Source of the DNA: Klebsormidium nitens | Taxonomy: Eukaryota; Plantae; Klebsormidiophyceae | DNA: 64,000 nt | NCBI GenBank assembly: GCA_000708835.1 | Contig: DF236984.1 | Location: forward strand, 228,384 to 292,383 | Direction of reading: 5' to 3' | Shown here: positions 21,801-44,286 of the stretch, one piece after another | Layout of the letters: every line of letters starts with the position of its first letter | How positions within the stretch are numbered: the first letter of the stretch is position 1 | Program-made: the position numbers and the translations under genes | Notes under the pieces: generated by a model | Databases searched by the model: none | Seen by the model: only the letters and a program-made list of their open reading frames with translations | What the model was told of the DNA's origin: nothing

Positions 21801-24305
21801 AGGAAACAGGCGCTTATCTTCGAAGGCAGTCGTTCATGGAACCTCAAATGGGGACCTCTGTTTTCGTTGAAAACGTGTTTGTGTGGGGCAGGGGCGACTA
21901 GCTGATAATACTACGGGTCTCGCGGAGCCGCAACCCCGCGAGCGGCGTTCCAAAGAGCGCAGAACTATACTGATCTTGCCAAATCCTCCTCAATGCTTTA
22001 AGCTTGAATCCTGGGAACACCCGGCTGAGCGCGCGCTAACCCCCTGCAAACCCTCCCGTAACCATCTCGGAGGACGAGCTCCATGACGTGAGCCCAACTC
22101 GAGCGGCCGCGACCCCGCGAGCGGCGAGAAGCACAGTGGACCTTTCAGTTCTGATTACCCTTGCTGAATCGCGCGCTAACCCCGTCGAAACTCTCCCAAA
22201 CCCACCTGGTTCATTAGGCAAACCCGACTTCGAGCGGCGTCCCGTACACCCGGAGGGGATCCCCCAATGCTTCCCTCCTGTCTTGTGCCAGGCCCGGCCC
22301 GCCCAGGCGACTCCACCGACCACATCTTTGCTCATGAGCGGGTCTGCCCAAGAGGTCGGGGTTGTGCCCCAGGCAGGTGTAGACGGAGTAGGAGCCAAAA
22401 GGCCTGCAGCCAGCCGACAGAGTCTGTCATGTATAATTGCACCAAGGGGTCCTCACTGTTGGCAACGAAGAATTATGGCCGAAAGAGGTATGCATTTTGA
22501 CCAGTCACCCCTTGGCAGAGGGATGCTACTTTGCAGATCCTTTACATTTATTGTGCAATTGTACGATCCTCCGCAGTTGGCAATCTGCGCTGCTTCGCAA
22601 TGGGATAAGATGAAAGATGGTCCTGAGGAATGGTAGCAGTCGAAAGGCTGCCTCAGCTCACACAGAGGCAAAACCTGAAGTTCCTTTTCTATGGCTGGGA
22701 TCTGTGGCTGGACTTTTGGCATACAACTCCCAAAGCAGACATCGCCAGCTGCTATGGTTTCTTTGCCGTTGGACTATAACGCTGGCGCTCAAAGCACTGC
22801 CTGACAATTAGAAATGAGAAGCCTTAGTGGTTCTCCCATTTCAATGAGGCCAACTAACTAGAGGGGGGGCCCTGCTCACCCGTGCGTTCAAGCGAAAGGC
22901 TGGCCGAACTCCGCTGCCCCGATGCTGTAACTAGGCACGTCCGCTGACTCAGCGCTGGGGGAGCCCAGAGTGTGCACTCCGGGTGTCAGGTCAAAAGGCA
23001 GCCAGTGCTCAGAGATGTTGCAGCGCTCTGGCAGCACCGTCGAGGCAGGTGGAACCTGCGTGTAAAAGTTCAACAAAATCATAGCCATAATAGGACATCA
23101 GTCTTGTCAGGTGTACGTGATTTTTGAAGCAAGTGTAAAGCAGATGCAGATGCACAATTTCAAAATCGCTTGCACAAGATTTCAAAACCGCTTGCACCAG
23201 ATTCCCAGCTGGCTGCAATTCCAAAGCATTGCGTGCGGTCCTCCGTGATTGATTGCTGAAGCAACATGGCTAGACACAATCTGCCAGCATGCCTGAAATG
23301 GGGTATAGAGGATGCGTCAGCATAGACCACTGGTGTCAGATTGTGCCTTGAAAGATCCTCACTGGCAAAGTTGCAGCGACGCACCAGTTACGCACTCCCA
23401 ACCAGAAAACTGAGCCAAATGCCCCCTTTATCCAGTTTGTGCGGCGAACAAAGAAGAAGTGGAGGACAAGGCAGCAACAGCAGAGCTAGTTTGATTAACT
23501 GGCCAACGTGAGTGATGTGGCGGCTGATAATAATGTGACCTTTTGGTGCTCATCTAGATTGGAAGTTAGCTAGACCACACCACCACCACCACCACCACCA
23601 CTTTCTGAAACTAGAATGGCATGAAGCCGGACCTGTCAATCTCTTTGTAAAAAGTGGATGTTGTTCTTGCCAGCTGGCGCCAGCTGGCAAAGCGTTCACT
23701 ATCAGCGTCAAGCTAGTACAGAAAGGAGCAGTTCGCCATAGTGCAGCGCAGCCAGGGATCCTGTAGCCAATGCCAATGCCATTTCAACCAGGTCTCCAAT
23801 GAGACATAAGCCAGAGGCACTGCCCCATCAAGCAGATTAATATGAAATTGACCACCTACCTGTCATGCACAGGTGCAGTCCTTCTATCCTTCTATGAGCT
23901 GACTTTCATTATTCCCAGCTAGAGGTCTCCCTCCTGTCAAAGTATCCAACCAATTTCAGCCGGTCATTGTCTGCGCCGCCGAATGCGCGCCAACAAAGCT
24001 GTTGCCGCCCTGAATGTAGTGGACGAAAGTCCGCTGAAGTTTGCTGCGGAGGACATTTCCACTTGTTACCAGAAAGACCATGGTGTCGTAGGCTGCCAAA
24101 CCCATTGGCTGAGCCCTGCGTTTCCAGGTTTCCAGGTGCTCAAAGCCACCTCTTTGCAGAGCTTAATTGGGGGAATCGGTCCATGCTGCTCTCCAGCTTG
24201 ACCTGTGAAGAGGAGGACTCGGAGGGGAGCTGCACCAATGCATTTGGTGCAGAATAGCATCCCTAGAAAGAGAATGTACCTAAGACAAATGGTTGGGCGC
24301 TTCAT
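18826..24305 (-). pseudogene. Pseudogenised, internally deleted copy (A) of the ThuA-GSDH-PKD-CBM6-F5/8C gene
   Basis: It has homologues of exon 1 (24305-23860), exon 2 (23055-22880), a fused exon 3/10 (22403-22206), exon 13 (21770-21680), exon 14 (21269-21127), exon 15 (20812-20668), exon 16 (20050-19907) and exon 17 (about 19304-18826). Frameshifts occur in exons 1, 2, 3 and 17. Exons 4-9 and 11-12 are missing. Confidence 0.85.
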
Positions 24306-24844
24306 CCCTGCACGGTAATTCGGTGACTGGCAGCCATCTCAGGCCCGCCAGCTTTCAACCTTCGAAGTTCGAACGTGTTCCACTGGCGCGCTTTTGATGT
24401 AGACAGGTACCGGTAGGACCTGAAGGTACTAGGTACCGTAGTACCGTCACGGTAGGTAGGAGCTATAGCTTATGGGACATGGTTGTCATGGTCAAACGGT
24501 CCGATCAGTGCCAAGTTGGATTATTCACAACAGTAAAACGGTCGGCATGTACCTACTACCTAGTAGGTAGATCAGTGTCGAAGCTTGAAGGGGCCCTCGG
24601 GCGGTGCGCCATTGGGGACCGGGCCACCGGGGTATTCTGTAGTAGCCGGCTAGATACTTAGTAAATTGTAGGTACCGGGGGGCCGCCTCGCCTCAGCCCG
24701 GGAGGTCCGGCCTGACTACTCCCGAGTCCCGACTCCCGAGTCCGAGTCCCAAGTACCGTACGTCCCTAGTACCGTACGACGACCGACAACGAGTCCGTAT
24801 AGTCCGGACTCGGGGAATCGACTACCTAGGTAGTTCAAGTTTTA

Positions 24845-27942: not shown

Positions 27943-29814
27943 AAACGTGCGGCTCCCAGTACTACGTGTGTGTAGTCGACAAGAGGTTGTGAGGGTTGGC
28001 ACTATTGGGAAAAGAGTCTACGCAATATGTATATAAGGCTTAACAATCTTTTGTGAGGAAGGAAGTATGAGATAAGCTGCAGCGTCCGTGTGGTAAGAAG
28101 TACGTCAAATCAAAGGTTCGCTTTGAGCAGGAATCGAAGCGGCGGAATTGCCACTAGCAAGTGTCACGGTAGTCAAAAAGGTAGTATATTCGGCCACATA
28201 TAAACAAATCTAGATGTGGAGCGAACTTAAAAGTTGTGCGCCATATTGGACTTCAAAACTCCAACGAAGGGTGTGTAACATACCAGAATTTTGTGTACCC
28301 CTCGCGAACAATAAATATGAAAGATTCGAGGCAGCTGTGGTACGTGGGCTCTTGAAAACGGATTGACATACATCTCTGCTCTGCCCGGTTGCGTGTTATG
28401 ACTCTCGTAGCCGGTATGTGCTATGATATCCTGTAAGTGCACGTCACATTATTACAATCAGTCACATGATAAACGACTTTTCATCAATCTGATTGTCGGA
28501 GGATTATCTTTGATACATCATATTGCCAAACTCGATCTGACGCGGGTATGTCGCGGCGTTCAATACATCGCTGACGAGGCAGACTCTGCCAAAGCACCAA
28601 AAGTTGCTTGTCCAGGCAGTGAATAAGTATACGTCTCAGTCTGTAGGCTGCTTTTTCAACATCTCAGCGCATGCTCCGCTGTGACGTTTTTGGAGTACCA
28701 GGTCGGGATTTAGAATTGCAGACACCAAAAGCTACTAAGATTGTAACAAGTGCTTAGCAAACGACAGAACCCGGGGCCAGACACACAGCGCGCACCTTTC
28801 CTCTTATTCGCTCCGACTATAACTTAAACTTTTCAGGCTTTTGTTTGCAAAACGCACATGATGGCTGGACAAATTGCTTGCTGGCAGCGGCAGCTTTACA
28901 CTCAGCCTGGCTAGCGCCGCAGTCCGACGGACCATATAGTACCGTCGTGCTTTCGTGATTTGTGGCACGTCCGAGGTGGATACAGCCGCGCGCGCCACCC
29001 GCGCGCCTGCACGTTTGGAGTACGTCGCCGTTGCGCCGCTAGCAGGTTTAATTAAAACCGGTATGCTTGGTAGATGGATCTATATTTCCGACTCAGTCGC
29101 GTACGTTCTCTGCATGCATGCATCCTCATATTGCGTCACGCTTAGGCTTTTCAAGATCACTGAGGTTTTGAGTGCATCTGAGCGGTACTTCATCTAAAAC
29201 CGGCTCATTTGAGGACGAACCGTTTGCATAGGAGACTTCAAGCCAACTGTATTGGAACTTGATATACCACAATCAACTTGAGCACTTTGGATATAAAACC
29301 GTGACCAACGTACTGAGCAACTCGAGACCGTACTGCAATGTACATTTGATCGGTCGGGCCCGACTGCCAGTTAGCACATTCTTCTATCATTGCTGAATCC
29401 ATACCGCACTGATCAAGTTCCATCGCACCTTGGGAGGCGGCCCGGTTTGCAGTGCAGCCCCTTGCCAGATCGTCTATCTAGTCTACAATCGCTTCGTGCT
29501 AACTCAAAGTGTGTAGACTCTTACTGTCTCTAGTTGAGAGCCGCGCGTTGGCGGCGTTTTGCGACATCGGTTGGAGCACGCGCGCTGGCAATCGTGAGGC
29601 CGTACGCGACTTCTAGATTCCTCACTTCTCATGAGTCAATGATCTCGTTGACCTTGGCTGCTCGCTGTATGCTCCCATCAATGAAAATATGCCGCTGAAT
29701 CAAAGAATATCTAATGTACAATTGGATCTGGATTGACCCCCATTGCATAGCGATTTCGGTCTATTTGGAAGTCAAGAGATTCGAGTAACCGCGCGTTCAA
29801 CTGTTCAACACTGC

Positions 29815-32800
29815 TCAAAATTCCAACGTGACGGGGGGCAGCCAGCCCACCGGATGCTGCGTCGTACTGATTCCCCCTCCGTTAAACGTGTGGTAATTCA
29901 ACACCACCAGATCTGTCGCGCCTTTCGTCTCCCCCCTGAACGTGAAAAACAAGCTGACGTTCCCCGGCCGTTGCGGCTCGCCCAGCATCCAAATCGACCG
30001 AGTGTCCGCATCGAAAACGCTCCGGGGCGGAAGGTCGTACACCGAGTTCGACGCGCGCGCGGCCCAGCCGTCTCTTCGCAGGGCCTTATCTTTATCATCG
30101 AAGACCGTAAGCTCGGAGATGGACCACGTGGCGGGCGACGTGCCGGTTTGGAGGATCTTGAGGTAGCGCGCGCTGACTGGAGTCTTTAACTTGATGTCGA
30201 CGAGGCCGGTAAACGAAGCGGAGACGTTGGCGGTCCCCGTTTGGGCGGTGGCGTATGGATACGTCGCCACCGACTGCGCATACGATATGTGGCCTTGTCA
30301 GAGGCTTGCGACCGGGCTCTTGCCAAATTTGACAGCTTTCGACGCTCACAAAGTGAGCAAAAGCGGAGAAAACTGGTCGACATTCCAGGCAATCCTCTTG
30401 GCTAGAGACTTCAAAGGTTTGAATTCTCGTTCCAAGCTTCTGGCTCGTGCCCTTGAAGCGAACCCCCGGCGCTTCAAAAAGGATTACTAAACTGCTGATG
30501 ATCAATCGAAGCAGTTGTCACCCACCCCGCGTCCTCGCAGAGTCGACGTACGATCTTCACTCTTCATTCCGCCTCAGATTTACGCAAAAATGGAAAGCAA
30601 GTGCTTTTCCGAGAACCCCAAAGGAGGAAGAAGCACGAGACTTACGAAAGCGAGCGGAACGAGGCTCGGGTTCCCCCACGTGACACCGTCCAGTGACGCG
30701 TAAAGCATGTAGCCGCGGCAGTAGTCGAAGGGCCGCCGGCCCGGATCCAGTAAGACGCGCGACACCGTCTGTGCGGCCTTCATGTCAACCTGCGGAAGTT
30801 TCAAAATCTCGGCTCGAAAGCTTTCTTTCTGGGCGGGCGTTTTGGACGGGGGATGGGTCAGTCCTCCGGCGACCAGAGAGCAGTCGAGGGTGTTGACTCC
30901 GTCGCTCGAACCAATTGGAAGATGAATCGCAAGTTTTCGTGAGAAGTCTTCAGAAGCAGGTGCACGAGTATACCCTCAGACACGTATCCTTTTTGAGGTG
31001 GCGATGAGAAGTTTCGAAGTCAAGGTGATGTGAGCACAAAATCAGTCCGAAACTATCAAAAAAGGAGGCAACCGACCTCAACAGCACGACAGGGGAAGCG
31101 GGATAAAATAGACACGCCTGATCGCTAGATTTCTCAATCTGACGCTTTTCAGCTTGGTGGCTACTCCACTTGTACTGAGCTTTTTGAATTCTGGTTCACA
31201 AGAATCAGGCTAAACGGGCGACACCGCCTGCGAAGGTTTTCATGGCCGCTTGCCGAAGCTTGCAGTTTGCGACATGCGATATTTTGAAGGCTATCCAACG
31301 GACTACAAGAGCTTTGAGAGCTCCAATGGGAAGAGAGCGAGTTCTGACCAGAAACCACTGGTTCGTGTCCTCAATGGGCGCCACGAAGTCTGTGAACTCT
31401 TGCGGCGCAGTTGGTGTGATCGGTACGGTCGCGATACGTCGGCCCTTGAGGGAGCCGATCCGCACGTCGACGTATGCGCGCTGCGAGCTGCGTAAGGATG
31501 GAAGCCAAGCTTGAGAAAACGGTGTTTTTGACCTGAACGAGTCCTACGGGAACTAGACCAGAGAAGAAAGCTTCTCACATGACAAGCGCTGTGAAAGAGC
31601 TCGCGCGTGTTCCCTTGCTTCAAGGCCACACACTTTCAGAATTTGTCAACAGTGCGGCTGGTCCCCAAAACGCACGCTGTAAGGGGGAGACTAAAGCTGA
31701 CGCGAAAGGCTTTCTCTTTCGTTTAGTCACAGAACGGGCATGCTGAGAGCATCAGCGGAGACTAAGGTGGAGACTCAAAGGTGTAAAACTGTCCGAGCTG
31801 GAATATACCTGTATGCGCGAATGCGTATGGAATCGATGTTGAACAGGTTCCAGTTGTCGTATCGTAGCCAGTCCCCGTCGGTGATATTGTACACTTCGGT
31901 TTCACCCCCGACAGGGTCAGCCGTCGGCCGCTCCAGAAGGTATGGGCTGCTCTGCAGAGGCAGAACCGCTTGAAAATCAGGAGAAAGGAACGGACGGTTC
32001 TCTTCGTGAAGGAGATTCGCCGAGTTGAACTTTCCCAGAGAAAATAAAGGCCTGCAATCCGTTCGAAAAGCTTTGGAATCCGCCGGATACCTCTTTTTAG
32101 ATGCTGAAGAACCGAAAGAGAGCTGCAAAATTGGCCTGATGAGAGGGCAGATAAGACTTTGAATGCGCAAATGCGAGAAACCTCTCGCTGTCCTCGTCAC
32201 AAAGGCAAGGCCAACTAAAACTAGTCATGGCTACTCATTGTTTGGCAGATATCTTTGGTGGCGGCATCGAGAAGAATTTGGCCACGTGCGGTGCAAAGCT
32301 CGTCTGCTAGCTAGGATGCACACGGACGCGGCAAGAGATTGGCAACCAGCCGGACTATTGAAGATGTTGTTTTGAGACCAACCTTGTCATCGTAGAACTC
32401 TGTCTGCCAGACAGATGGCATAATCTGGGACCACCCAATGCCAGTCAGCGGCGGTGCTCCGTTCAAGCCGCCGCTGCAATCAAAGTGGGTCCGAGTATAA
32501 GATCAAGAAAAGGGCGCTTAAATTTGAACGCAACCATTCAAACGCATATCTTGACCTCTGTCCTTTTTAAAGTCGTGTTCGTGTGAGGCAGGGCCGAGAA
32601 AAGAACGGGTCTGTGATGCTGAGAACGCTTCAAGCACTTTCGTGTGCGTTTTCTGGTTCTTTCTGATCCAGCAATAATGGCGATCCATCGTACACCTCAA
32701 GGGTTGTTTGTACTCGCGCAGCGTCTCAAGTCTGCGAATTCCAAACCCACCTCGGAACTTCCTTCAAGATCCAACTCAACTCAAGATCGAAGTCGGTCAA

Positions 32801-35800
32801 TCTCAAGCTCATTCATGTCCAGATCAATCCAATCTGGGTCAAAACCTGTTTCAGAGCACTCGAGACCCGTGACAATCGATCGCTAAAGAAGGATCCGAAA
32901 CGCTCACTGGTCCGGATAGATCCCTTCCACAAGGTAGTAGAATTTCTCCCAGGAGTGCTCGTCAATCAGCGGTCCAAACGTGGCTTGGCAGTCGTAGTAG
33001 GTGATGCTGTTGTGCTCGTGGCACGGGGAACTGGGCGACGGGCAGTGGCCGAGACCGGGGATCACTTGCACCGTGCTGCAAGAGATGCCGCCGTCCTCGG
33101 TGCTGCCGTCTTCGGCGTCGAAGACGGCCACCTGCGGAAAAAGGATATATGCAGGAATTTCGACAAGAAAACCTATCGACCCAGTATCCCCTGTTTGGCC
33201 ACAAATTCATGCGTGAAATCGGGTTACATGCACCGCGCGCGTGCTGCACAAATTGGGTGCGGCCATCCGTGTGCTACTGAGTTTCGCGTCGAAGAGGGCC
33301 ACCTGCGGAGGATGCTTAAGGGGTTTTGACGGTCAAGTACATTGGAAGGAGCCGTTCTCAGCCGTACCGTCCCTGGCGTTAAGAGACGGCTACCGGTAGG
33401 AAGGTCGACCTGCGGCGTATCGTGTCTTCGTAGACTTTTTCGGGCAACAGTCAAATTAACCTTTCTTTCGCAGAAGAGGAGAGAGAAACTTTTGAAATCA
33501 CAAGTTTGCGTTGCAGCTTTTCCTCAAATTGTGAAAGAACCGGTCGCCGCAACACCTGAAACTGTTTCAGTTCACCCAATGTGTTGCTGACGACGACTAG
33601 CGCGCCTGCTTCCTCGGAAAGTATTGACCGATATGGAATTGAGCTACAACGTTTCGAAGGTGGATGTACCAATACGAAGATAGGAACTGTGGATGGACGA
33701 GAGGGGGGGCGACCCATGATCGGCTTACCTTGAAGTCAACCTCGTCGCCCCACGTAAACACCCCCCCCTGCGGCGGGAAGACCACACGCACGTCCGGCGC
33801 AGTGTTCCCCTCAGATGCCACGTCGACGGGAATGGTGCACGACTTGGTGCTGGCCGCGGTGGTAATGGTCAGCGTTGCCACGTGGACGCCGGCAACGGTG
33901 TACACGTAGTGCGGGTGCGGCTCGTACGTGTCGACCGTTCCGTTGGAGTTGAAGTCCCACGCGAAAGTCATGTCGAGGCCGTCGCTGCGGAAAGGTGACG
34001 TCGAAATCGTCAGGAAAGCGTGGATTGGGTCTGAGGGAAAAAAAATTAGAGCCTCATATTGAAGCGTCCTTCAAAGTTGCGCATAACCTGAGAACAAACC
34101 TGATTTTCTGACGCACTAAATTTTGGGACGTCTGCGCGCTTGAAAAGTTTCAGGAACAAGCCTCGGAGCCTCAATCTTCACCTAGAATATGTATCTCAAA
34201 GCGATCTGATAGTTGAGCCCGAAAGCTTGACAGAGGACGAAGAGAGGTTGCGCCGCGCGTCTCAGGCTGCGCTTGTGCTCCAATCGAACCACAAGCTCGC
34301 ACACCCAATTCTTGCAAAGCATGAGCAACCAGGATCTTTGATGAATTCCGCACATCCCTGAACCAGAAGATTCAGATGCACAAAGGGGCAGAGAAAGCCT
34401 CTGTCTATTTAGATCAAAACAGCTGATACAGCGTGCTTCGCTCCGGCATCGCCCCAGCTGCAAAACTCTATCAGGCAGTACTCCTGCAGCTCCTTACACG
34501 TTGCTCAATCGCCATCAACGGGGAAGGGTCCTCGCAACCGCTCCAGATTATTTCAGTTGACGATTACCAATTCCGTAAATCCGGTTTCGCGATCGTGTTC
34601 CATCTTTTGAAACAGCGCGGAACCTCCACAAAATTCCTACACCCTGCTGGGATCAGTCGTTATCCTCTGGAAGGATCTGTGCTAAAACCTGGTGATTTGC
34701 GCGCTAAACCCGCTTAAATTTTTGCCTCATTCACTTCCTTGACGAGTTCGTGAAACCAACATCAAGCTGCCGCGGTCCGTAGACATGTTTCAAATTCTCA
34801 AAGAGGTGAAATTTAGAATATTGCTAAACCCTGCTGAATCTCTCGCTAACCCCGCTGAAACCCTCCCAAACCCACCTGGTTGACGAGCCCCAACTCGTAA
34901 ACCCGACCTCGAGCGGTCGCGGCCCCGCGAGCGGCGTTCCGTACACCTGGCAGTGGATCGGACTGGCGACGCCCATGTAGCGTAACCGGCTTAAGCGGGC
35001 GCCTTTTAGGTCGAAACCCTGGCCGAACTCAACTATGTACAGAGACCCATCGGGGGCGACCTCGATGTCCATGGGAGATAACCAGGTGAAGCTGGTGAAG
35101 GCCGGGGTGACGGAGAGGATGTTGGCGTTCTCGTCGAATTTGAGCAGCCGGATCTGGTCCCTGGACGGAAAGAGAAGATCGGGCGGGTGAGATGTACTAA
35201 AGGAAAGGGATCCACATTGCTTTGTAATTAAGCTGAAAATTTCGAGAAACCTCTACGAGAGCGGAAGTCGTGTGGAATCCAAGTAAGGTGAAACGGAGAA
35301 GAGACTAAACTGGGACCAATCGGCGTTGAACGTATCTTAAAGAACCTCCTGCGAAAGATCTCGAAAATTTCCTCAAATCCGAAGCTTTTGAACTTATCTC
35401 CAGCACCACCACTACGATCATGCATGCTGGCACTGAGGCACACAGGAAACCCTTGTTTCATTACAAATCTTGAACGATCTTGCCGCGAATCGCCCGTAAT
35501 CAACTCACATCTTAGAAATTCCACTATGGGCCTGCCCGCTTCACACAATTTCATAGTACCTCTGCGGAATGAAGTGACTATCTCCCCTGGAGAATGTCTC
35601 GACAGGATGAACTACCAAAACCTGCAACATTCGTACTTGCTTGCAAGGTGAACCGGTCTGCAACCCACCTGAACCAGTCGGCCGCGAACAGAGTGTTGTC
35701 GAAATACGGAGGCAGTCGGTAGGGCGCCCCGGGCGCGATGAACGGGTGGTCGTACCGGTAGAAGAACGGTGCGACAATGCAGCGACCGGCCGCTTTGCTG

Positions 35801-38800
35801 GGATCTGCCGCGTCGAACTGCGGCCAGTCTTTGCTGGGGCCGTAGTTGTAATACACCATGGCAGGCCGAGACGGCGGCAGTCCTGTAAGAATCAGACTCT
35901 CAAGTTTTATGAAAAGTCTTCAACATTGAAAGCGAAAACATTCGAAGCAGAACTCTCAAGAGATGGCCTCTTGAGTAGATGGGGCTCCAGAAGTCTCCGT
36001 CAGCTTTCGGTTCACATGAAGTCACTGGATGGTGAAGCTTTTCGTCTTTTCCAAAGTAAAAGGCGACAGGGAGACGTTGATCTGCCCTGTGGACCGGCCA
36101 GCTCTACGAGCCCAAGATACTTTCGCACTGCCAGTGATCCCCGCACTTTTCTGTCATTAGGAAGTGAGTAGGACTGTTTTCGTCACAACTTTCTTCCAAA
36201 ACCCTATGTGTTTCAAGCTCCTTTGCAAGGAGAAGTAGAGCTGCACATCTTCACAACAAGGGACAGCCTCGCTTAGCACCTTTCGGAAGGGCTTTCGCAA
36301 GGCTTCTCCGTTCTGACTCCCTGAAAAGAAAGCAGCAACTCACCTGTCTTGGCCCCGTTGTTGTTCGGAGATAAATTGCTCGGGTTCTCGCAGTCGAACG
36401 GCACGCCCGTACTCTGCTGCGTTGAATAGTCAAACTTCACATACGGCAGATTCGGCCCAATGCAATACGGCCAGCCGTAGTTCCCCGGTTCGTCGAATTT
36501 GAGCTGGTTGATTTCGTCCATTCCCAGGGGTCCGCGAGCGGGGTTGGGCGCGGTCTCGTCCGGGCCGACGTCGCCCCAGTATAGGTTATTGGTGTGCGGG
36601 TCGATGGAGAAGCGGAACGGATTGCGCACGCCCATCGCGTATATCTCCGGCCTGCGCAATAGCACATGTCTTCTCAGAGGAGTGCGAAAGTCTGGTTAGC
36701 GGGTTGATGGGGTGACGTCGGCCCGGACGAGATCGCGGAGGGGATTGATTTCCACGCCCATCGCGTATATTTCCGGCCTGCGAACCAACAGCTGGATAGC
36801 TTTTAAAATGAATCAAAGTTTTTCGGTGTGCGGTTTGATGCAGAAGGGGAACGGGTCGCGCGCACGCCCATCGCATATATCTCTGGCCTGCGGACCGACA
36901 GATTGCAAGCAGGAAAGTAGATATGCTTGGAATGCGGGGTTTGATGGGGAAGCGGGACGGGTTACTGCGAATGCTCATCGCGTATGACTCCGCCTTGTCG
37001 AGGGGGGAATACTTACGAGTTGAAAAGGGCCGAGATTGCACATCAAAGTTCTTTACAGTTGCCTCAGCTGAGGTGAAAAGGTCAACCGAACTTCACGAGC
37101 AAGTACTAGCGAGAGCAGAGGAGTAAGAAGGCTGGCTCGGAGTCAAATTGGCCGGTTGATTCTTCTGCACTTTTATCAACACTCCCTTTCAGGGACACCC
37201 CTTATTCGTTCTCAAAATTTACGAACCTCGCTTTCGCCCAACACGCTTGTCTCGGATTAGTTGCAAAATCGCAGTGACTCTTCTTGGAGATCGCTGCGTA
37301 CAGATCCTCTGCACTCAGCGTCCAGTTATCCGCCTAATCAGTCCTACGCAACAGCCTGAGATTTTCACAACCTGAAAAGTATCAACGACAACTCAAGGAG
37401 GACCAAACAGGAAAGATGTGCTGACCTGTGCAAGTCGTCCCCTGGAAACAGGTTGTTGGGCGGGATCTCGTAGCCGTCCTCGGTTGGCCTGATCCGGTTG
37501 ATGGCCCCTCGGAGGTCGTTCGTGTTGGCCGCAGACTTTTGCGAGTCGAGCACGTAGAACCCTGGGCGGTCGTCGGTGGGCGCCCAGCCGCTGCAAAAGA
37601 CACCGTGACATATTCAGATACAAAGTTTGATGACGTCATTCAGCGTCAGCATGACGTCATCAAAAGTGGGCATTAGCTCACGTAGAAACCCGGGCGGTCG
37701 TCGGTGGGCGCCCAGCCGCTGCAGAAAGAAAACCGGGACAACTTCAGATACGAATTGCGTTGACGTCGTCTGGTGTCAGCATGATGTCATCAAATGTCAG
37801 CAGTGGTGTACGCAGGAACGCGGGCGGTCGACGGTGGGCGCCCAGCTGCTGCAAAACAAAAAACGAGACGATAAACGATGACGTCGTTCACTAAGCAATG
37901 GTTGCACGAAAGCCCGGGCGGTCGTCGGTGGGCGTCCAGCCGGCTAACATAGAAACGGGAACGGATTTGCAAGATAGGTCCTAGATGATGACGTCACCCG
38001 GCGTAGGCAGTAGCGCACCCGAAGCCCGACGCTTATGTCCGGGGCTGCCCAGCTGAGACCGTACGCAGGCCGTCGATTTAGCAATCTTCGGGTCCGCCGT
38101 TTAAATGAGTTACCCGTTGTGAGAGCATGAGAATTTTTGAACCAGCTGTCTCGACGAAGTTGACCTCAACATGCAGCTTGGCTTCCGCTGGACTGCCAAG
38201 CCAGCCGCGATCTGAGAAATGCAAAAGTGAAGTGCCCCAAAAGAGTTCAGGCTTCCGATTCCCCCGCTCTACTACGATCCATTCCTTTGGGAAGGGGTTT
38301 TTAAGAGACAGTGTGAAGTGAGCTTACGTCTGGTAGGTGTTATCGCCCACGCTGAGCAGCAGGTTGCCGTGCGAATCGAACTTGATGTTGCCCCCGCTAT
38401 GGCAGCACGCCAGCCGCTGCGAACGAAAGGGACAAAGGCCTTTTTATAACGTAGAACAAGAAGACGAAATGTCTGGAATGTTGCGGCGGCCCTAAAAAAC
38501 GCAAGCAGGAACGCCCTCTTTTCATTACTTCGAACGCAGAATGAGGTCGTCCGTACCTCTTTCTTTTTCTTTCGGTGACTGCAGCTTGTACTGTTCGCTT
38601 TACACCACTCGCTCTATTCGTCGGGTTGCTTTCACGCTTCTTCTTTCTGCTCCATCTAGAATCCCGTGGGCTCTATCCTTTTCTTCCAGAAAGCCGGGAA
38701 GCAGTAAAAAGAACGAGAAAGGGAAGACTTTCGAGCGCACCTGTGTGTTGATCCTTAGCAGCCGCTTCTCGGACGACACGTCCACGGTGTCGCCTGTCAT

Positions 38801-41800
38801 CTTGTAACGCGAAAGTATGTTCTGAGTTGGGCTGGTCTCGTGCACGGGCGACCAGTAGACGTAGATGTACCCGTTGTTCTCGAAGTCCGGGTCGAGCCCC
38901 AACCCGAGCAAACCGTCCTCGTTGCTGTTGGTCACATTCCACCGGGCAGCTGACAAGAGTAGGTTTCAGGGTTTAGGGGTACGTTGAGAAAGTTAACTCA
39001 ACGGACAGGATCACCGAGCTTTTGGTAGATCCACATTCCACCGGGCAGCTGACAAGAGGAATCTCAGGGTTAGGGGTACATTAAGCAGATTAAGTCAACG
39101 GTCAAGGTTATGGAGCTTTTTGGAGATCTACCAACCGGCCGTGTGAGTCGCTCGCCAGACAGTAAAAGCTACTGAGCGTCAACGTACAAGATTCGAAGCC
39201 GGGATGGAATCGTGGGGCGGGCTGCTTCGAGCGCGGCGTTCTCGGGGCGAGCGGATACTTTTATGTGCGCCTACTTTTATGACGAGCGCTTACTTTTATT
39301 ATGAGCGCCGCTCCACCAAGGAACGTACCCTTTAGGTACACGAACAGACACTGTCTTTGTTCTTAAAATGGTTTCAGCCAGTCTTGAAAACTTCGTTTCT
39401 GCTGAGACGTGATGTTTCCGCCGGTAAGCGGTCTTCTGCTCGTTCTCAAGCAACGCAGCCTACAAAGGACGGAACGGCGGAAGCGGAAGGGAGGGAGCTG
39501 ACCGGTGCTTATGGTGCTTGTGGCGGGGTTGAAGATCTGGAGCTCGCCGTTTCGGACGACGATGAACACTCGGCCGTCGGGAGCGATCGCGATGGACATG
39601 GGCTGCAGAGAGGCCGGAGTATATCAGCAGATGCGGAGTACACTGTGCGAGATTGACAATCCTTCGGATAACTGTCTCTCCTTCCACATGTGTTGAGCGA
39701 GGTTGGTAGTTTTGACTGCTTCCAAGTGTCGGTTCGGACAGATCTTCTGAGAGCAATTGGAGGGAAGGACTATTCAGTCGTACTGGAGTACCCCAGATTG
39801 AGCACGGTAGGAGCATTGGAGACGAAGTGCCATGAGCTTGAGAATGATTTAGATCTCCACATGTGTGCCCAAGTTTCCCTTTCGCAACTTTTGACCATTG
39901 ATAAGGTGACCTATGAAGTGCCCAGAAAGTGGCAAGCAAGGCATTTGAATTGCGTTTTCCAAAATATCGACTGATAAATCCTTGATGAAAGTTGGTTTCG
40001 TGCTGACCACTCGATTGCCAGCCCAAAGAAGTACCGAGGGCTTAGAAATCAACGAATCCGAGATTAGACGTACAACGCAACGCCGCCATACCTGCTCCCC
40101 TTGCTGGAAGTTGTACAGCGTATCCTTCTCGTAGGCAGCGTCGTTGGTCGCCGTTCCGTCATCATCCGCCATCATTCTCCCCTCCTTTGCCAGCAGACTC
40201 CGGGCCCGCGTGTCCACTGGTAGGTGCCCGGAGGGAATCCCCGGGTGCTCCCCGCCCTGCTTCTGCCAGGCCCGGCCCGCCCAGGCGATTCCCCCAACCA
40301 CATGTTTGATCATCAGCGGGTCTGCCCAGAGGTCGGGGTTGTGGCCCAGGGAGGTGTAGAAGGAGCGTGAACCAAAAGGCCTGCAGCCAATGGCTGGAAC
40401 GTTTGGAATGACTTCAGAAATTGGGGCTTAGGCCTCTGGCAAAGTTCAGTGTCGACAGAAAGAGTTCCCTGCTCTATTCTTTTAAGCGCCTTGCCACATG
40501 GATCATGCAGCTTTGCGGCTCGACAACCTGCTAGATGTGGGAACCAACGTCCTCAGACTTGACAGTTGAAGCTGGTATAGGACAGCTAAAAGGAGAAAGG
40601 TTCAGAGAAGAGACCTGAGGGATCATCACAGCTGCAAGGCTGCTCCAGCTTCCAATGGTCACAAGTCTGAAGGTCCTGTCGCCAGATATCTTCTAACTGA
40701 AGGTCCAGCAGCCGACTCTTAAAAAGCAAGCATGGCCAGCTTACATGGTCACTTGCATTAACAACCAGGCTAATGCTCAGAAGTTGGATCAACATCAATC
40801 ATCAGAATGATCAGCCACAGCGCTTACGATTACGCTATTCTGATAAGAGTCAGCTATATAGACTGGGGGCCCTGCTCACCTGTGTGTCCAAGCGATAGGC
40901 TGGTCAAATTGTGCTGCCCCAATGTTGTAACCAGGCATGTCGGCTGAGCGCTGGAGGAGCGCCAGAGTGTGCACTCCGGGGGTCAGGTCAAAAGCTAGCC
41001 AGTGCTCAGAGACGTTCCAGCGCTCTGGTAGCACCGTAGACGCAGGGTGAAATCTGCAGATCGAAGATAGAAGACACCATTTCTTGTCAGATGTTATATG
41101 TTAAGGGCAGGGATATAGCAGCTTTGAGTGCATTGTATTGAACCAAATCGCTCCAGACTAGCTAAATGCACCTTAGGATCATGAGACTTCACTAAATGCT
41201 GAAACAAGCTGGCTGCATAGAGTCTGCAGTGCCACCGTGTTCTGATATGTACCTAGTAGAAAGGTTGTGTCAGCAGAGAGCAGTTTCAGATTCTGTCACG
41301 AATGATGCTCAACTGCTCATCCTCCAGGTTAACTTTTCAAGTTGCAACAGCGCACTAATTGACCTCAAAAGAGGATACCAGAACGATCCGTTGTAGGCAC
41401 CTTTCATCCAGGTTGTGCGGCAAAAACAAATCTTCAAAACGTTGGATCAGAGGTCCAGTAAGAGCTGGAGAATTAGACAGCAGATCTAGGTGGAATAGTC
41501 TACGAGGCTGATCTGAGTGGTATAGCAGCTCATTGTAATACAAGTACCTGGTGCTCAACTAACTGGAAGCTAGCTAAACTGCACCACCACCACCACCACC
41601 ACCACTTTTATGAAACTACATTGTCTGAAACTGGACCTGACATTATTGAAGTAGTGGACGTCATCGTGCCAGCTGCAAGGCAGTATGTAAAGAAGCATTT
41701 CACTTATTGTGCCTCGCAGCCATGGATTCTGAAATCAATGCGGGTGCCATTTCAACCAAGTCCTCAATGACACACAAGCCAGAGGCACTGCCCCTTTGAC

Positions 41801-42287
41801 CAGATTACTTCACGAACTTGACCACCTACCTGTCATGCACGAGTACAGTCCCTCCTGTGAGCTGACTTCCATTCCTCCCAGCTGCAGGTCTCCCTCCTAT
41901 CAGAGTATCAAACCAATCCCAGCCGATCATTGTCTCTGCCGCCGAATGCACGCCAACAAAGCTGCCGCCGCCCTGGATGTAGTTTGCAATAGCATTCCGC
42001 TGATCTTTGCTGCTAAGGACGTTTCCACTTGTTAGCAGAAAGACGATGGTGTCATAGGCTGTCAAACCCGTTGGACTGAGCCCTGTGCTGGTTTCCAGGT
42101 GGTCAACCATCCAGCCCTGCTCGAAGCCAGCTCTTTGCAGAGCTTCAACAGCTGGGGGAATCGATTCATGCTGCTCTTCAGCTTGACCTGTGAAGAGGAG
42201 TACTCGAAGGGGAGCTGCACCAATGCATGTGGTGCAGAATAGCATCCCTAAAAGGACAATGCAAGACAAATGGCTGGGCGCCTTCAT
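29815..42287 (-). CDS. Secreted multidomain protein of about 1248 aa: signal peptide, ThuA-like, PQQ-dependent sugar dehydrogenase (GSDH beta-propeller), PKD, CBM6-like, F5/8 type C (discoidin). Exons 42287-41830, 41053-40880, 40380-40092, 39602-39503, 38949-38741, 38416-38328, 37590-37426, 36651-36344, 35882-35669, 35160-34876, 33984-33729, 33131-32908, 32473-32383, 31951-31809, 31487-31349, 30789-30646, 30273-29815
   Basis: All 16 introns are GT-AG and the phases sum to 3747 nt with no internal stop. Motifs: RVLLFT...GGGSFVGVHSA...RSFYTSLGH (ThuA); PMSIAIAPDGRVF, EDGLLGLGLDPDFENNGYIY, CCHSGGNIKFD...GD, SAANTNDLRG, EIYAMGVRNPFR, GNYGWPYC, PMDIEVAPDGSLY (GSDH); FAWDFNSNGTVD (PKD); ITDGDWLRY...IDSI (CBM6-like); QWFLVDMKAAQTVSRV...SLDGVTW and ARYLKI...WSISEL (F5/8C). 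The extreme C-terminus is less certain. Confidence 0.9.
33121..33420 (-). repeat. Degenerate duplicates of the exon-12 acceptor and exon start in the upstream intron
   Basis: CGTCGAAGACGGCCACCTGCGGA (exon start) recurs as CGTCGAAGAGGGCCACCTGCGGA near 33287-33309, and partially (GACCTGCGGCG) near 33407. Confidence 0.7.
36640..37000 (-). repeat. Three degenerate copies (about 105-110 bp spacing) of the exon-8 acceptor junction
   Basis: CACGCCCATCGCGTATATCTCCGGCCTGCG (36628-36656) recurs at about 36753-36782 and 36863-36892, and decayed at about 36970-36996. Confidence 0.8.
37553..37995 (-). repeat. Tandem array (about 95-130 bp units) of exon-7 start, acceptor and TGACGTCA-rich intron
   Basis: GGGCGGTCGTCGGTGGGCGCCCAGCCGCTGCA occurs at about 37564 (real exon), 37692, 37822 and 37917, with progressive decay away from the exon. 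Confidence 0.85.
38933..39130 (-). repeat. Duplication (about 98 bp) of the exon-5 acceptor junction
   Basis: CACATTCCACCGGGCAGCTGACAAGAG is identical at about 38933 and 39032, and the following intron sequence is also repeated. Confidence 0.85.
41582..41605. repeat. (CAC)n microsatellite in GSDH intron 1; paralogous tract at about 23577-23601
   Basis: Directly visible in both duplication units. Confidence 0.8.
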
Positions 42288-44286
42288 CCCTGCTCGGTGA
42301 CTGGCAGCCATCTTGCCAGCCTTCAAGCGTCCGCTGACGATCGCTTCGTCATGCACGAAGACGTGCTTGTCCCACCCAACATCGTCTGAAGCCCGAGGCT
42401 CGAGCTCCCTGGGCCTAAGCCTTCGATCGTTTCCACTGTGGCGCCTTTTGATCACTTGCCTAAATCATATCAGGGCAGATGTATTCGAACTGCTCAAGCT
42501 GCGTCTCTAACGTGTACTCGTGTTGATCAACAGTCTTTGGTAGGCGCTACAAATGTGATGTGCGCGAAAATGACCGGGTACGGTACGTTTCGGTACGGTA
42601 CGGTACCTATAGCAACATAGTACCGGTACAATGCTGGGAGTCTGTGCCTGGGGCCCTCGGGCTGGGTGTAGGGCCGCGGACATTCTTCTATCTACCGGTA
42701 CATGATCGGTCGCTCGGGTTACTAAGAGTCGGGTACCAACCAGTACCAAGGTCCCAACGTACTCTTTGCTGGACAGTACCAACTTCACAAAGCATGCCAG
42801 GATACCGGTAGGTAGCCTGGATAGGTACGCGATTGTGCACTGCGCACTGCGCAATTGTTTGCAACACTTGCGCAAAGTCCGAAGTCAGACGAAAGCCAGC
42901 GTGTCATTGGAAATTGAAGTCTGACCCTCGGTTTTCTTCTGCAACTTATCGAGCGGCTAGGAATGAAGCAAATGCCTTGAGATTCAGGAGAATTCAGTGA
43001 CAACTGTGTATCAAATGACGTCAAAAGAGCGTCATGGTCCAGATTTGCCACAGAATGACGAGCGCGTTGCAGGGCCGTTGACTGTGTGGACAGCACATGC
43101 AGCCACACAGGCCGCGAGACACCCACAGGCGACCGTGCTATTCGAAGTTGGGCCATCCGAGGTCGCCGTCTCTTCAGTCCACGTTCTGTGATGTTTGCTT
43201 TAACACGATCGGAAACTTTCAACCTGTGAACGATGAATGGCGGCATTGGGGAAATGCAGGCTGCAGGATGGCGTGACAAGGGCGTCGCCTTCGAAGTGGT
43301 TGCTTCTGATTCTGTGTCCTGCGAAGGTTGCCCCTTCGGCAAACTGACAAATATCCGTTCGGAATCCCCACTGCTCATGCTTGACTGGTCATGCTGGACA
43401 GGCCCACAAGAAGAAGAAAGTGATACAATGGTGTGAGAAGGACGAGCAGCGGTAGATCCGTCTGAAAAGCTTGGCGCCGCAGGAAGGAACTGGTAAGCAG
43501 TGCCTTGAAAGTTTTGAGGCGAAGTAACTTCACAAACTTATACTCCCTGATGCAACTGGCCAGTCAGCCAAAAGGCTGCATTTGCGATCTGCATAGGTTT
43601 GAAACAAAGAGCTCAGTACACCTTTGACTATCTTCATGAGAACACCACAACTGACAGATATTGACGGTATCATTGACTGAGGGTATCTGTCAAGTAGTCA
43701 GTTCAGAAGTGCTAGTTATATCAGTAGAAGCTGAGAGCCGTGCCCCATTGCAATTTGATCCTGTGGAGACAGCCAGAGTGAAATTGTTAAAGAGAAGGAG
43801 TGGTCGAAAGTAGGAGAAATCTGATTCTTACGCTGCGACCTTGACATTCCTACTTTGTCTCTTTGGAGTTTAGCTCAGGATGACAAGTTGGCATTTGGAG
43901 TGTCCCTTTCCCTGAGCTCAATTAGCCTTTGGACTCACATCAAACAAAGCCCCTCAAAGGCTGGCTTGCTTGGTATAGAAGGATTCACTACCTGTCGCCC
44001 GGGTTCGTGAGGCAGTGCCCCAGATGAAGATTGTCGATCTGCTTTCATTGGCGCATGTTTCTCTGGTCTTTGACTGTTTCGCAAACCAAATGGTGTGCAG
44101 ACTGGAAAAACGTTCGTATCTTTGAATAAGCCTTCAACAGTGTGAAGGCGGCAGAAAAAGTAGACAACTGGCCGTGCTCTGATCAAGGGCTTCTTCTGCA
44201 GGCTAAGTCAGCCAGCAGGTACTAAGGGGAAGTTTAGGCATGACATGGGAACTGAGAAGGAGACAGTCGCAAGAAGGCGGCACAGA

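Follow-up and report, generated by a model that had tools for sequence, protein, structure and literature searches.

We identified an intron-rich nuclear gene within a 64,000-nucleotide window of the Klebsormidium nitens genome (the whole stretch of contig DF236984.1 that we analyzed, from whose first letter all positions are counted), and our overall reading, to which we assign a probability of roughly 70%, is that it is a gene of bacterial origin from a secreted family, duplicated and kept under selection, whose product is an enzyme acting on sugar outside the cell. Gene transfer into streptophyte algae is already well known, PAL being one bacterial gene reported to have been transferred into streptophytes (PMC10849092), and what gives the present case its value is this particular enzyme and the way it is built: compared with PAL, the gene is much larger, multi-domain and kept entire, and has so far been seen only in Klebsormidium-like algae. 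With 3.8 kb and six domains taken over in one piece, it is an unusually clean and large transfer from a bacterium to a streptophyte, with a nested module pointing to the donor subgroup and with a host—a terrestrial alga near the base of the land-plant lineage—that has since duplicated the gene and kept it under selection. A literature search returned no report of this ThuA-GSDH-PKD-CBM6 family in Klebsormidium or any other streptophyte.

Our independent gene model places the gene on the minus strand, from 42311/42287 down to 29815, with 17 exons, 16 GT-AG introns and a coding sequence of 3771 nt without internal stop, reproducing the coordinates, the exon and intron counts and the 1248-residue product given in the preliminary description. 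That length is counted from the ATG at 42287; starting 24 nt farther upstream, from the in-frame ATG at 42311 with its better context, the product has 1256 residues, and the reading frame ends at a TGA stop (29817–29815). The features of the gene are as follows.

29815–42311, minus strand: whole coding span, from our own model and transcript contigs
41830–42311, minus strand: exon 1, with both ATGs (42311 and 42287), a signal-peptide-like stretch and the N-terminal half of ThuA
40880–41053, minus strand: exon 2, ThuA; 174 nt, the same length as in loci L001, L083 and L084
40092–40380, minus strand: exon 3, the last part of ThuA up to about 40167 and a linker beyond it
39503–39602, minus strand: exon 4, start of the GSDH propeller; donor CCG/GTCAGC, placed by spacing to bacterial guide proteins
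38741–38949, minus strand: exon 5, GSDH
38328–38416, minus strand: exon 6, GSDH with the CCHSGG motif; His424 at 38401–38399
37426–37590, minus strand: exon 7, GSDH
36344–36651, minus strand: exon 8, GSDH with Arg512-Asn513 (36626–36621) and the GNYGWPYC motif
35669–35882, minus strand: exon 9, GSDH; its tail accounts for the loose end that the transcript contigs show at 35163
34876–35160, minus strand: exon 10, end of GSDH with Ser705 (35078–35076) and Met707, from transcript contigs and alignment
33729–33984, minus strand: exon 11, PKD domain (Pfam PKD 26.6 bits, cut-off 23.5)
32908–33131, minus strand: exon 12, His-rich Ig-like beta-sandwich, from transcript contigs and predicted fold
31349–32473, minus strand: exons 13–15 (32473–32383, 31951–31809 and 31487–31349), N-terminal three quarters of CBM6
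29959–31360, minus strand: discoidin (F5/8 type C, CBM32-like) inserted in CBM6 and circularly permuted, from Pfam, collinear alignment and fold matches
29815–29958, minus strand: within exon 17 (30273–29815), the last CBM6 strands from V1210 and the stop

To evaluate the splice junctions, we used transcript contigs of four runs, each from a different study. These contigs skip introns 10–16 exactly at the modelled junctions with 0 mismatches and, counting the exon 9 tail, join exons 9–17 as modelled. Our model is matched exactly by transcripts from exon 9 onward, while junctions 1–8 rest on sequence evidence: canonical splice sites, an alignment to bacterial homologues that is gap-free across each of them, and exon lengths and phases that are identical in about five other algal loci (L001, L083, L084 and L086–88). 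The contigs extend 2121–2181 nt 5' of exon 10, compatible with the predicted 2030 nt plus a 5' UTR, and the transcript continues below 29300 (a 3' UTR of more than 500 nt) and about 90–150 nt above 42311. Three alternative structures were rejected. An exon 4 donor at 39464 is at odds with the spacing to the bacterial guide proteins, and the five paralogous loci in which exon 4 is covered (L001, L083, L084, L086 and L088) keep the 100-nt exon; an exon 10 acceptor at 35196 is ruled out by the contig loose end; and a missed intron at GGGAAC/GTCAGC with further downstream exons disagrees with transcripts that run through exon 17 and its stop unspliced, and with a stop position that is the same in L001 and L084. 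In several introns of the gene the acceptor site is tandemly duplicated, and introns 4, 6 and 7 contain decoy acceptors.

These observations support a real, expressed, intron-rich nuclear gene, and they leave virtually no chance that the sequence stems from contaminating bacteria or from faulty assembly, an explanation that has the bacterial type of the protein in its favor and nothing else. It is refuted by the spliced transcripts, found in four studies at 100% identity, and further opposed by the 16 spliceosomal introns, by a eukaryotic GC pattern (0.60 in the coding sequence vs. 0.45–0.54 in introns) and by flanks that hold other intron-bearing genes and a decayed tandem copy of the gene itself.

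The encoded protein is predicted to comprise, in order, an N-terminal hydrophobic stretch, ThuA, an sGDH-type GSDH propeller, PKD, a His-rich Ig-like sandwich, and a CBM6 with a discoidin domain inside it. Exon pieces or bacterial proxies served as queries in external searches; among the exon pieces, Pfam recovers ThuA (PF06283) in exon 1 at 85.8 bits (cut-off 33.4) and GSDH (PF07995) in exons 5 and 8 at 32.7 and 32.6 bits (cut-off 25), with weak matches to CBM6 and F5/8 type C. All domains named in the preliminary description are present, but the discoidin domain lies within CBM6 and not after it. The insert starts at Q1053 (31360) and takes up the end of exon 15, exon 16 (30789–30646) and most of exon 17. 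In P0096, a bacterial relative with which the alga is collinear, the Pfam matches follow one another as CBM_6 profile positions 1–98, F5/8 positions 23–126 and F5/8 positions 2–32, and Pfam profile coordinates place a discoidin domain inside CBM6 in the bacterial protein P0174 as well. An AlphaFold2 model of P0096 residues 905–1190 likewise suggests nesting, with the CBM6 structure 2V4V matching over residues 3–276 (Z 16.0) and CBM32/F5-8 folds over residues 103–205 (Z about 8). Reading the C-terminus as a second, cut-short discoidin domain was rejected, since the apparent tail consists of the N-terminal discoidin strands followed by the last CBM6 strands.

We next consider where this architecture occurs outside the alga. 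Searches returned at least 7073 homologues, every named one of which is bacterial, and the family occurs in the genomes of at least 594 bacterial species; members with the ThuA-GSDH-PKD-CBM6 order include P0096 (from an uncultured bacterium), P0174, and proteins from Paenibacillus, Cohnella, Micromonospora, Solirubrobacter, Verrucomicrobiota and Bacteroidota. The claim that the architecture is typical of bacteria stands, as the whole order, nested module included, matches a very large bacterial family. Alga and bacterial relatives share 35–39% identity collinearly over 1000–1217 residues, with single blastp alignments spanning residues 25–1241 against P0096, residues 29–1239 against P0174 and about 1000 residues against dozens more, and they have the CCH, RNP and GNYGWPYC motifs and the His-rich Ig-like domain in common. 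The algal gene differs in its 16 introns, its eukaryotic N-terminus and a 6-residue insert in the His cluster, and it lacks the extra C-terminal modules of bacterial members (malectin, PA14, ConA-like and, in those from Bacteroidota, a T9SS tail).

A maximum-likelihood tree joins the two algal sequences with bacterial P0096 as their sister (SH-aLRT 94), within a starred clade of eight rows that also holds proteins named Paenibacillus and Cohnella. P0096 is itself an uninterrupted open reading frame on a gene-dense bacterial contig, and it has three indels and the nested CBM6/discoidin module in common with the alga. This tree came from a quick search and is unrooted, with an algal stem of 1.37 and weak deep nodes, so it does not fix the donor lineage. 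The unrooted topology and long stem, together with a eukaryotic sampling that cannot be audited, are also what could be said for an ancient eukaryotic family with vertical descent and widespread loss, or for a transfer from alga to bacteria. We regard both as very unlikely, given thousands of homologues across six bacterial phyla (Actinomycetota, Bacillota, Bacteroidota, Rhodothermota, Verrucomicrobiota and Planctomycetota) vs. one algal group, derived indels and a nested module common to the alga and one bacterial subgroup, and a search of 1.84 billion representatives in which sequences more than 63% identical to exon 8 are solely Klebsormidium-like fragments. Other eukaryotes were excluded through the top hits of these large searches; the protein collections have gaps, as the alga's own full-length protein was not found in them, only exon-sized fragments. 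Collectively, the bacterial homologues, the grouping with P0096, the shared module and indels, and the dN/dS of 0.11 between algal copies make a transfer from bacteria to the alga well supported, in agreement with the horizontal origin proposed earlier. The evidence indicates that the Klebsormidium-type nuclear gene descends from one bacterial ThuA-GSDH-PKD-CBM6 gene, taken up whole with its rare discoidin-in-CBM6 module, and that 16 spliceosomal introns and a eukaryotic signal peptide were gained after uptake.

Comparison of the window gene with its paralogue L001 (dN/dS 0.11, dS of about 1, introns no longer alignable) points to duplication after the introns were in place, followed by purifying selection on a gene that is transcribed and spliced. 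Every intron would then postdate the transfer and predate the duplication, making the gene a substrate for the study of intron gain that is dated by design. A partial tandem copy just downstream, at 24320–18886, was considered as a second working gene and rejected as decayed.

Conservation is uneven across the protein. Of the 53 ThuA positions at which the bacterial fusion family reaches 90% conservation or more (DTE, HP, R..DEWY, DHP..WC), the window gene keeps 35 (66%) and L001 68%, compared with a minimum of 75% and a median of 96% among the bacterial fusion proteins. Losses include D126E, E128M, H145G, R175V, E178H, H212Q and C217T, four of which differ between the window gene and L001. 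The available PDB structures of ThuA proteins, 4JQS and 4E5V, are uncharacterized, and catalytic residues could not be identified from them. The algal domain looks degenerate, and probably has lost the bacterial active site and taken on a structural or altered role. The architecture can accordingly be called intact in that all domains are present, but with ThuA below the bacterial minimum this does not imply that every domain works as in bacteria.

The GSDH propeller is better kept. As the preliminary description had noted, it retains the His of the CCHSGG motif and the GxRN motif, and alignment through the bacterial family profile places His424 and Arg512-Asn513 (in GVRNP) opposite His144 and Arg228-Asn229 of Acinetobacter sGDH. 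Against PDB, that profile matches 2ISM at E = 9e-31 and 1C9U at 1.8e-18; the algal domain has the six-bladed propeller, these residues and the Gly-Pro...Asp-Glu loop in common with sGDH/Asd proteins (1C9U, 2G8S, 2ISM and 3A9G), and differs from them in being fused to ThuA, PKD and carbohydrate-binding modules and in not keeping the equivalents of Arg406, Arg408 and Lys377. HHIP, a distantly related propeller and the member of the HHIP/HIPL1 type compared here, matches far more weakly than bacterial sGDH (E of about 5e-15, over profile positions 16–218 only), and the 15 PDB matches with E <= 0.01 include no AA12 chain. HHIP/HIPL1-type proteins are not known to carry ThuA, PKD, the His-rich domain or CBM6. 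By sequence search, the proposed separation of this GSDH from HHIP/HIPL-type and AA12 proteins was borne out.

The residues opposite Arg406, Arg408 and Lys377, the PQQ-carboxylate ligands of sGDH, are Ser705, Met707 and Phe in the alga; the position of Gln231 is also Phe, a long insert follows GWPYC, and the Arg neighboring Lys377 (Arg378 in sGDH) is conserved. These substitutions, together with changes at R459 and K477 (each more than 90% conserved in bacteria) in both the window gene and L001, the loss of active-site-like residues from ThuA and the good preservation of the binding modules, are what would be expected of a protein of bacterial origin that is no oxidoreductase at all, having lost cofactor binding to become a wall-associated glycan-binding or structural protein. 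We consider this unlikely: the GSDH domain retains its catalytic His, its Arg-Asn pair and its GP...DE loop, it has the second lowest dN/dS among the large domains (0.068), and it keeps 86% of bacterial near-invariant columns, within the bacterial range of 82–97%. Moreover, most bacteria of the family have Arg at the first of the three ligand positions only, and P0096 has His even there, which argues that this position varies within the family.

Under our preferred reading of a secreted sugar oxidoreductase, the protein would most likely pass through the secretory pathway to the cell wall or the medium, where it would be held on polysaccharide by its two carbohydrate-binding folds and where its sGDH-type propeller would oxidize a sugar or the end of a sugar chain by means of the His base and Arg-Asn pair. 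Residues 12–33 (to about 42213), the sole stretch with a 19-residue mean Kyte-Doolittle hydropathy above 1.6, and the two folds fit the earlier description of the protein as extracellular and glycan-tethered, with both secretion and binding remaining predictions. The cofactor is the weakest link of this explanation: it may be bacterium-derived PQQ, by analogy with fungal AA12, yet dependence of the algal enzyme on PQQ is so far not supported by its residues. In a fuller version, the alga took an extracellular sugar oxidoreductase of PQQ type in one piece from soil bacteria, and this enzyme is active only with PQQ from neighboring bacteria, its substrates being either glycans of the environment or the callose or heteroxylan of the alga's own wall. 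This version seems to us possible but on balance doubtful. If the propeller does use PQQ, the green lineage would have a PQQ-type sugar dehydrogenase reliant on a bacterial cofactor; if neighboring bacteria supply it, a cross-kingdom cofactor dependency would be built into a streptophyte cell wall.

To our knowledge, no member of the bacterial ThuA-GSDH-PKD-CBM6 family has been characterized or has had an activity measured, and the algal gene offers a first eukaryotic handle on this huge family. Analogies can be drawn with two other systems. Fungi depend on PQQ that they do not produce themselves (PMC6881789, PMC6881810), and their AA12 enzymes, such as Coprinopsis CcPDH and Trichoderma TrAA12, offer a possible parallel for how the algal protein works, as secreted propeller dehydrogenases with a CBM in a host that does not make PQQ; the algal protein lacks their cytochrome domain, differs in origin and architecture, and is not a member of AA12. 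Teredinibacter turnerae secretes CBM-tethered GSDH/cytochrome c proteins, redox candidates found in cellulose cultures, which are likewise uncharacterized and differ in carrying CBM5/10 and cytochrome c and no ThuA (PMC12055684).

Finally, exon 12 encodes the His-rich domain, recognizable by a G-H...H-x-H motif, a Cys pair and the alga-specific insert. Its predicted structure (pLDDT 90) resembles Ig/Fn3-like sandwiches of a generic kind and nothing more specific (best Z 7.3), from which no function could be assigned. No other part of the gene is as constrained as this domain, with its dN/dS of 0.03.

Six-frame translation showed successive open segments on the minus strand, whose peptides resemble ThuA, GSDH, PKD, CBM6 and discoidin. 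We built a gene model independently of the preliminary description, using tblastn with bacterial guide proteins and listing phase-compatible GT/AG sites for each gap. This yielded 17 exons and 16 introns (all GT-AG, 321-891 nt), with a coding sequence of 3771 nt that contains no internal stops and has a GC content of 0.60, vs. 0.45-0.54 in introns.

Exons of the window gene (start, end, strand, exon, evidence)
42311-41830, minus, exon 1, gene model
41053-40880, minus, exon 2, gene model
40380-40092, minus, exon 3, gene model
39602-39503, minus, exon 4, gene model; weak GTCAGC donor
38949-38741, minus, exon 5, gene model
38416-38328, minus, exon 6, gene model
37590-37426, minus, exon 7, gene model
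36651-36344, minus, exon 8, gene model
35882-35669, minus, exon 9, gene model; tail found as contig loose end
35160-34876, minus, exon 10, gene model and transcript contigs
33984-33729, minus, exon 11, gene model and transcript contigs
33131-32908, minus, exon 12, gene model and transcript contigs
32473-32383, minus, exon 13, gene model and transcript contigs
31951-31809, minus, exon 14, gene model and transcript contigs
31487-31349, minus, exon 15, gene model and transcript contigs
30789-30646, minus, exon 16, gene model and transcript contigs
30273-29815, minus, exon 17, gene model and transcript contigs

The encoded protein has 1256 aa from the first ATG (42311) or 1248 aa from ATG 42287, the latter reproducing the coordinates, exon count and length of the preliminary description. 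Because a Met of the same gene on another contig, L001, aligns with the second ATG, either start is possible. The sole hydrophobic stretch of the protein (aa 12-33) is followed by small residues, and the protein is predicted to be secreted.

Between 19 and 44% of the words of a 10-kb part of the gene were present in 19 public runs from 7 studies, a share close to the exonic fraction of the gene. Transcript contigs of four runs, one per study (n = 4 studies), were aligned to 29300-35299, where they showed no differences from the window and skipped 30273/30646, 30789/31349, 31487/31809, 31951/32383, 32473/32908, 33131/33729 and 33984/34876, each skip being bounded by minus-strand GT..AG. Together with a loose end at 35163 that carries the exon 9 tail, these exact skips confirm that the gene is transcribed and spliced at junctions 9-16 of the 16 originally proposed, junctions 1-8 lying outside the aligned interval. 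The last exon continues unspliced past the stop to below 29300, and long contigs extend 2121-2181 nt 5' of exon 10 vs. 2030 nt predicted for exons 1-9, an excess consistent with a 5' UTR of ~90-150 nt. Introns 15 (30761-31376) and 11 (33104-33756) are spanned by contigs of low depth (34 and 46 vs. ~300 for the spliced form in run X1), indicating that unspliced or intron-retaining RNA exists for both.

Searching exon 8 against 1.84 billion representative proteins returned one close cluster (91% identity), which consists of fragments of exon size found in JGI, ENA and Logan assemblies, and the fragments' contigs (L001, L083, L084/L085 and L086-88) carry the same gene. All 17 exons are present in L001 and L084, with all phases and the stop position unchanged and with exon 2 and exons 4-17 equal in length to those of the window (174, 100, 209, 89, 165, 308, 214, 285, 256, 224, 91, 143, 139, 144 and 459 nt), a conservation that supports junctions 1-8, including the weak donor of exon 4. 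The window gene and L001 share 82% amino-acid identity (dN 0.11, dS 1.03, dN/dS 0.11), and their introns are unalignable. Every domain is under purifying selection, with dN/dS of 0.16 in ThuA, 0.068 in GSDH, 0.13 in PKD, 0.03 in the His-rich domain, 0.07 in CBM6, 0.19 in discoidin and 0.13 in the tail. As L001, L083 and L084 are mutually 95-97% identical vs. ~87% to the window gene, these represent a gene family of several copies. The gene had been integrated and had gained its introns before it was duplicated. In the metagenome contig L083 (15069-15346), exon 11, encoding PKD, is divided between two reading frames; either this copy carries a frameshift and may be a pseudogene, or the contig is misassembled.

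The remaining matches were proteins of bacterial type, 700-2500 aa long, that contain ThuA, GSDH, PKD and CBM6. Scanning one genome per species, we found a relative in at least 594 bacterial species, spanning Streptomyces and other Actinomycetota, Paenibacillaceae, Rhodothermales, Bacteroidota, Verrucomicrobiota, Planctomycetota and Fibrobacterota. When P0096, a homologue from an uncultured bacterium, was used in a word-indexed search, at least 7073 relatives were returned, all named ones being bacterial; among the nearest ESM Atlas clusters, 6 of the 10 listed have recorded taxa, and those are 100% Bacteria. The 4.3-kb ORF of P0096 is uninterrupted and lies beside an AraC/cupin gene on a contig that is compact and dense in genes, features that mark P0096 as bacterial.

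The spliced algal protein aligns to bacterial proteins in a single alignment of ~1000-1217 aa at 35-39% identity. In a maximum-likelihood tree of aa 30-935 (LG+C20+F+G4, quick search; 57 rows, of which 55 were bacterial proteins left after a 62% identity filter and the other two the window gene and L001), the algal pair has a long stem (1.37) and P0096 as its sister (SH-aLRT 94). The algal pair and P0096 fall in a starred clade of 8 rows that also contains the Paenibacillus and Cohnella proteins P0183, P0186 and P0234. The alga and P0096 also share inserts of 2 aa before GNYGWPYC, 3 aa before GEQP and 1 aa in TG-LPP, as well as a nested C-terminal module outside the tree alignment, independent characters that agree with the tree. 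The gene is thus of bacterial ancestry, as the preliminary description had proposed in invoking horizontal transfer. Our literature search found no description of this gene in any streptophyte; gene transfer into streptophyte algae is already an established phenomenon, and the interest here lies in how large and complete the transferred gene is, in the nested-domain marker and in the question of PQQ.

The C-terminal order was initially read as CBM6 followed by discoidin and requires correction, as the discoidin domain sits inside CBM6. In P0096 and a second bacterial homologue, P0174, Pfam assigns CBM_6 positions 1-98, directly followed by F5/8 type C 23-126 and then F5/8 2-32, and the alga is collinear with both as far as its stop codon. 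An AlphaFold2 model of P0096:905-1190, a bacterial proxy with algal exons included in the alignment (pLDDT 69), matches the CBM6 structure 2V4V (Z 16.0, rmsd 2.2) over 114 residues spread across model residues 3-276, while residues 103-205 match CBM32/F5-8 folds (Z ~8), so that discoidin is inserted in a CBM6 loop; the Pfam profile order indicates that the insert is circularly permuted. The last 47 algal residues correspond to the closing CBM6 strands, explaining both their conservation and the position of the protein end. Apart from the alga, this rare nested arrangement was observed in P0096 and P0174 alone, and it provides strong evidence that the whole gene came from their bacterial subgroup.

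The algal protein may be tethered to glycans. The top Foldseek match of the P0096 model was 1W9S, a beta-1,3-glucan-binding CBM6 (38% identity, 102 columns). One publication is, by its title, on callose in Klebsormidium (PMC4650865), which makes callose a candidate ligand, the 1W9S match belonging to the bacterial proxy and not to the algal sequence.

Among solved structures, the bacterial propeller profile matches the PQQ sugar dehydrogenases 2ISM (9e-31), 3A9G, 2G8S and 1C9U, with a weaker, partial match to HHIP (5e-15) and none to AA12 chains. Residue equivalences from the 1C9U alignment and our own bear out the reported retention of the CCHSGG His and the RN of GxRN: the alga keeps His424 (H144 in soluble PQQ glucose dehydrogenase, sGDH), Arg512-Asn513 (R228-N229) and the Gly-Pro...Asp-Glu loop. 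At the positions of Arg406, Arg408 and Lys377, which have roles in PQQ binding in sGDH, the alga has Ser, Met and Phe; of the three, most family bacteria retain just Arg406, a position held by His in P0096. Of the GSDH columns with a conservation of 90% or more among bacteria, the alga retains 86%, which lies inside the 82-97% found for the bacterial proteins, so the propeller looks functional; it would oxidise a sugar. In eight-bladed PQQ dehydrogenases, two vicinal Cys lie beside the cofactor; in the alga, an adjacent Cys pair directly precedes the catalytic-type His (C422-C423-H424, 38407-38399), and is kept in most of the bacterial family. PQQ use by the algal protein is speculative; fungal AA12 enzymes illustrate that a eukaryote can use PQQ without making it (PMC6881789, PMC6881810), and a cellulose-grown bacterium secretes CBM-bearing GSDH proteins (PMC12055684).

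The algal ThuA retains 66-68% of its columns that pass the same 90% conservation threshold, below the bacterial minimum of 75%, so its ancestral site looks lost, with the fold apparently kept. The lost polar residues are D126, E128, H145, R175, E178, H212 and C217, of which four (E128, H145, R175 and H212) differ between the two algal copies. In one bacterial ESM Atlas cluster near P0096, a 3-keto-disaccharide hydrolase domain (PF06439) accompanies ThuA and PKD, a hint that ThuA in such proteins acts on oxidised (keto) sugars. Between PKD and CBM6 lies a domain that is confidently modelled as an Ig-like sandwich (pLDDT 90) and has a near-invariant G-H..H-x-H plus Cys pattern; a structural search with this model gave no informative match.

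We also observed tandem arrays (period ~97-130 nt) at the 3' ends of three introns.

Tandem acceptor arrays
36623-36997, minus, intron 7/exon 8, 4 copies
37551-37950, minus, intron 6/exon 7, 4 copies
38933-39131, minus, intron 4/exon 5, 2 copies

Each unit comprises the acceptor site and 17-40 nt from the start of the downstream exon, with copies 69-100% identical, thereby placing 'decoy' acceptors upstream. In L001, L083 and L084, the starts of exons 8, 9 and 12 likewise recur as partial copies within introns, the remaining intron sequence being unalignable. Finally, a decayed partial tandem copy lies directly downstream of the gene (18886-24320, minus strand), in which exons 1-3 and 13-17 alone have counterparts and the GSDH, PKD and His-rich exons are absent. 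Its exons 1 and 17 are interrupted by in-frame stops as well as frameshifts, exon 2 by in-frame stops and exon 3 by frameshifts, and the copy also has internal deletions.
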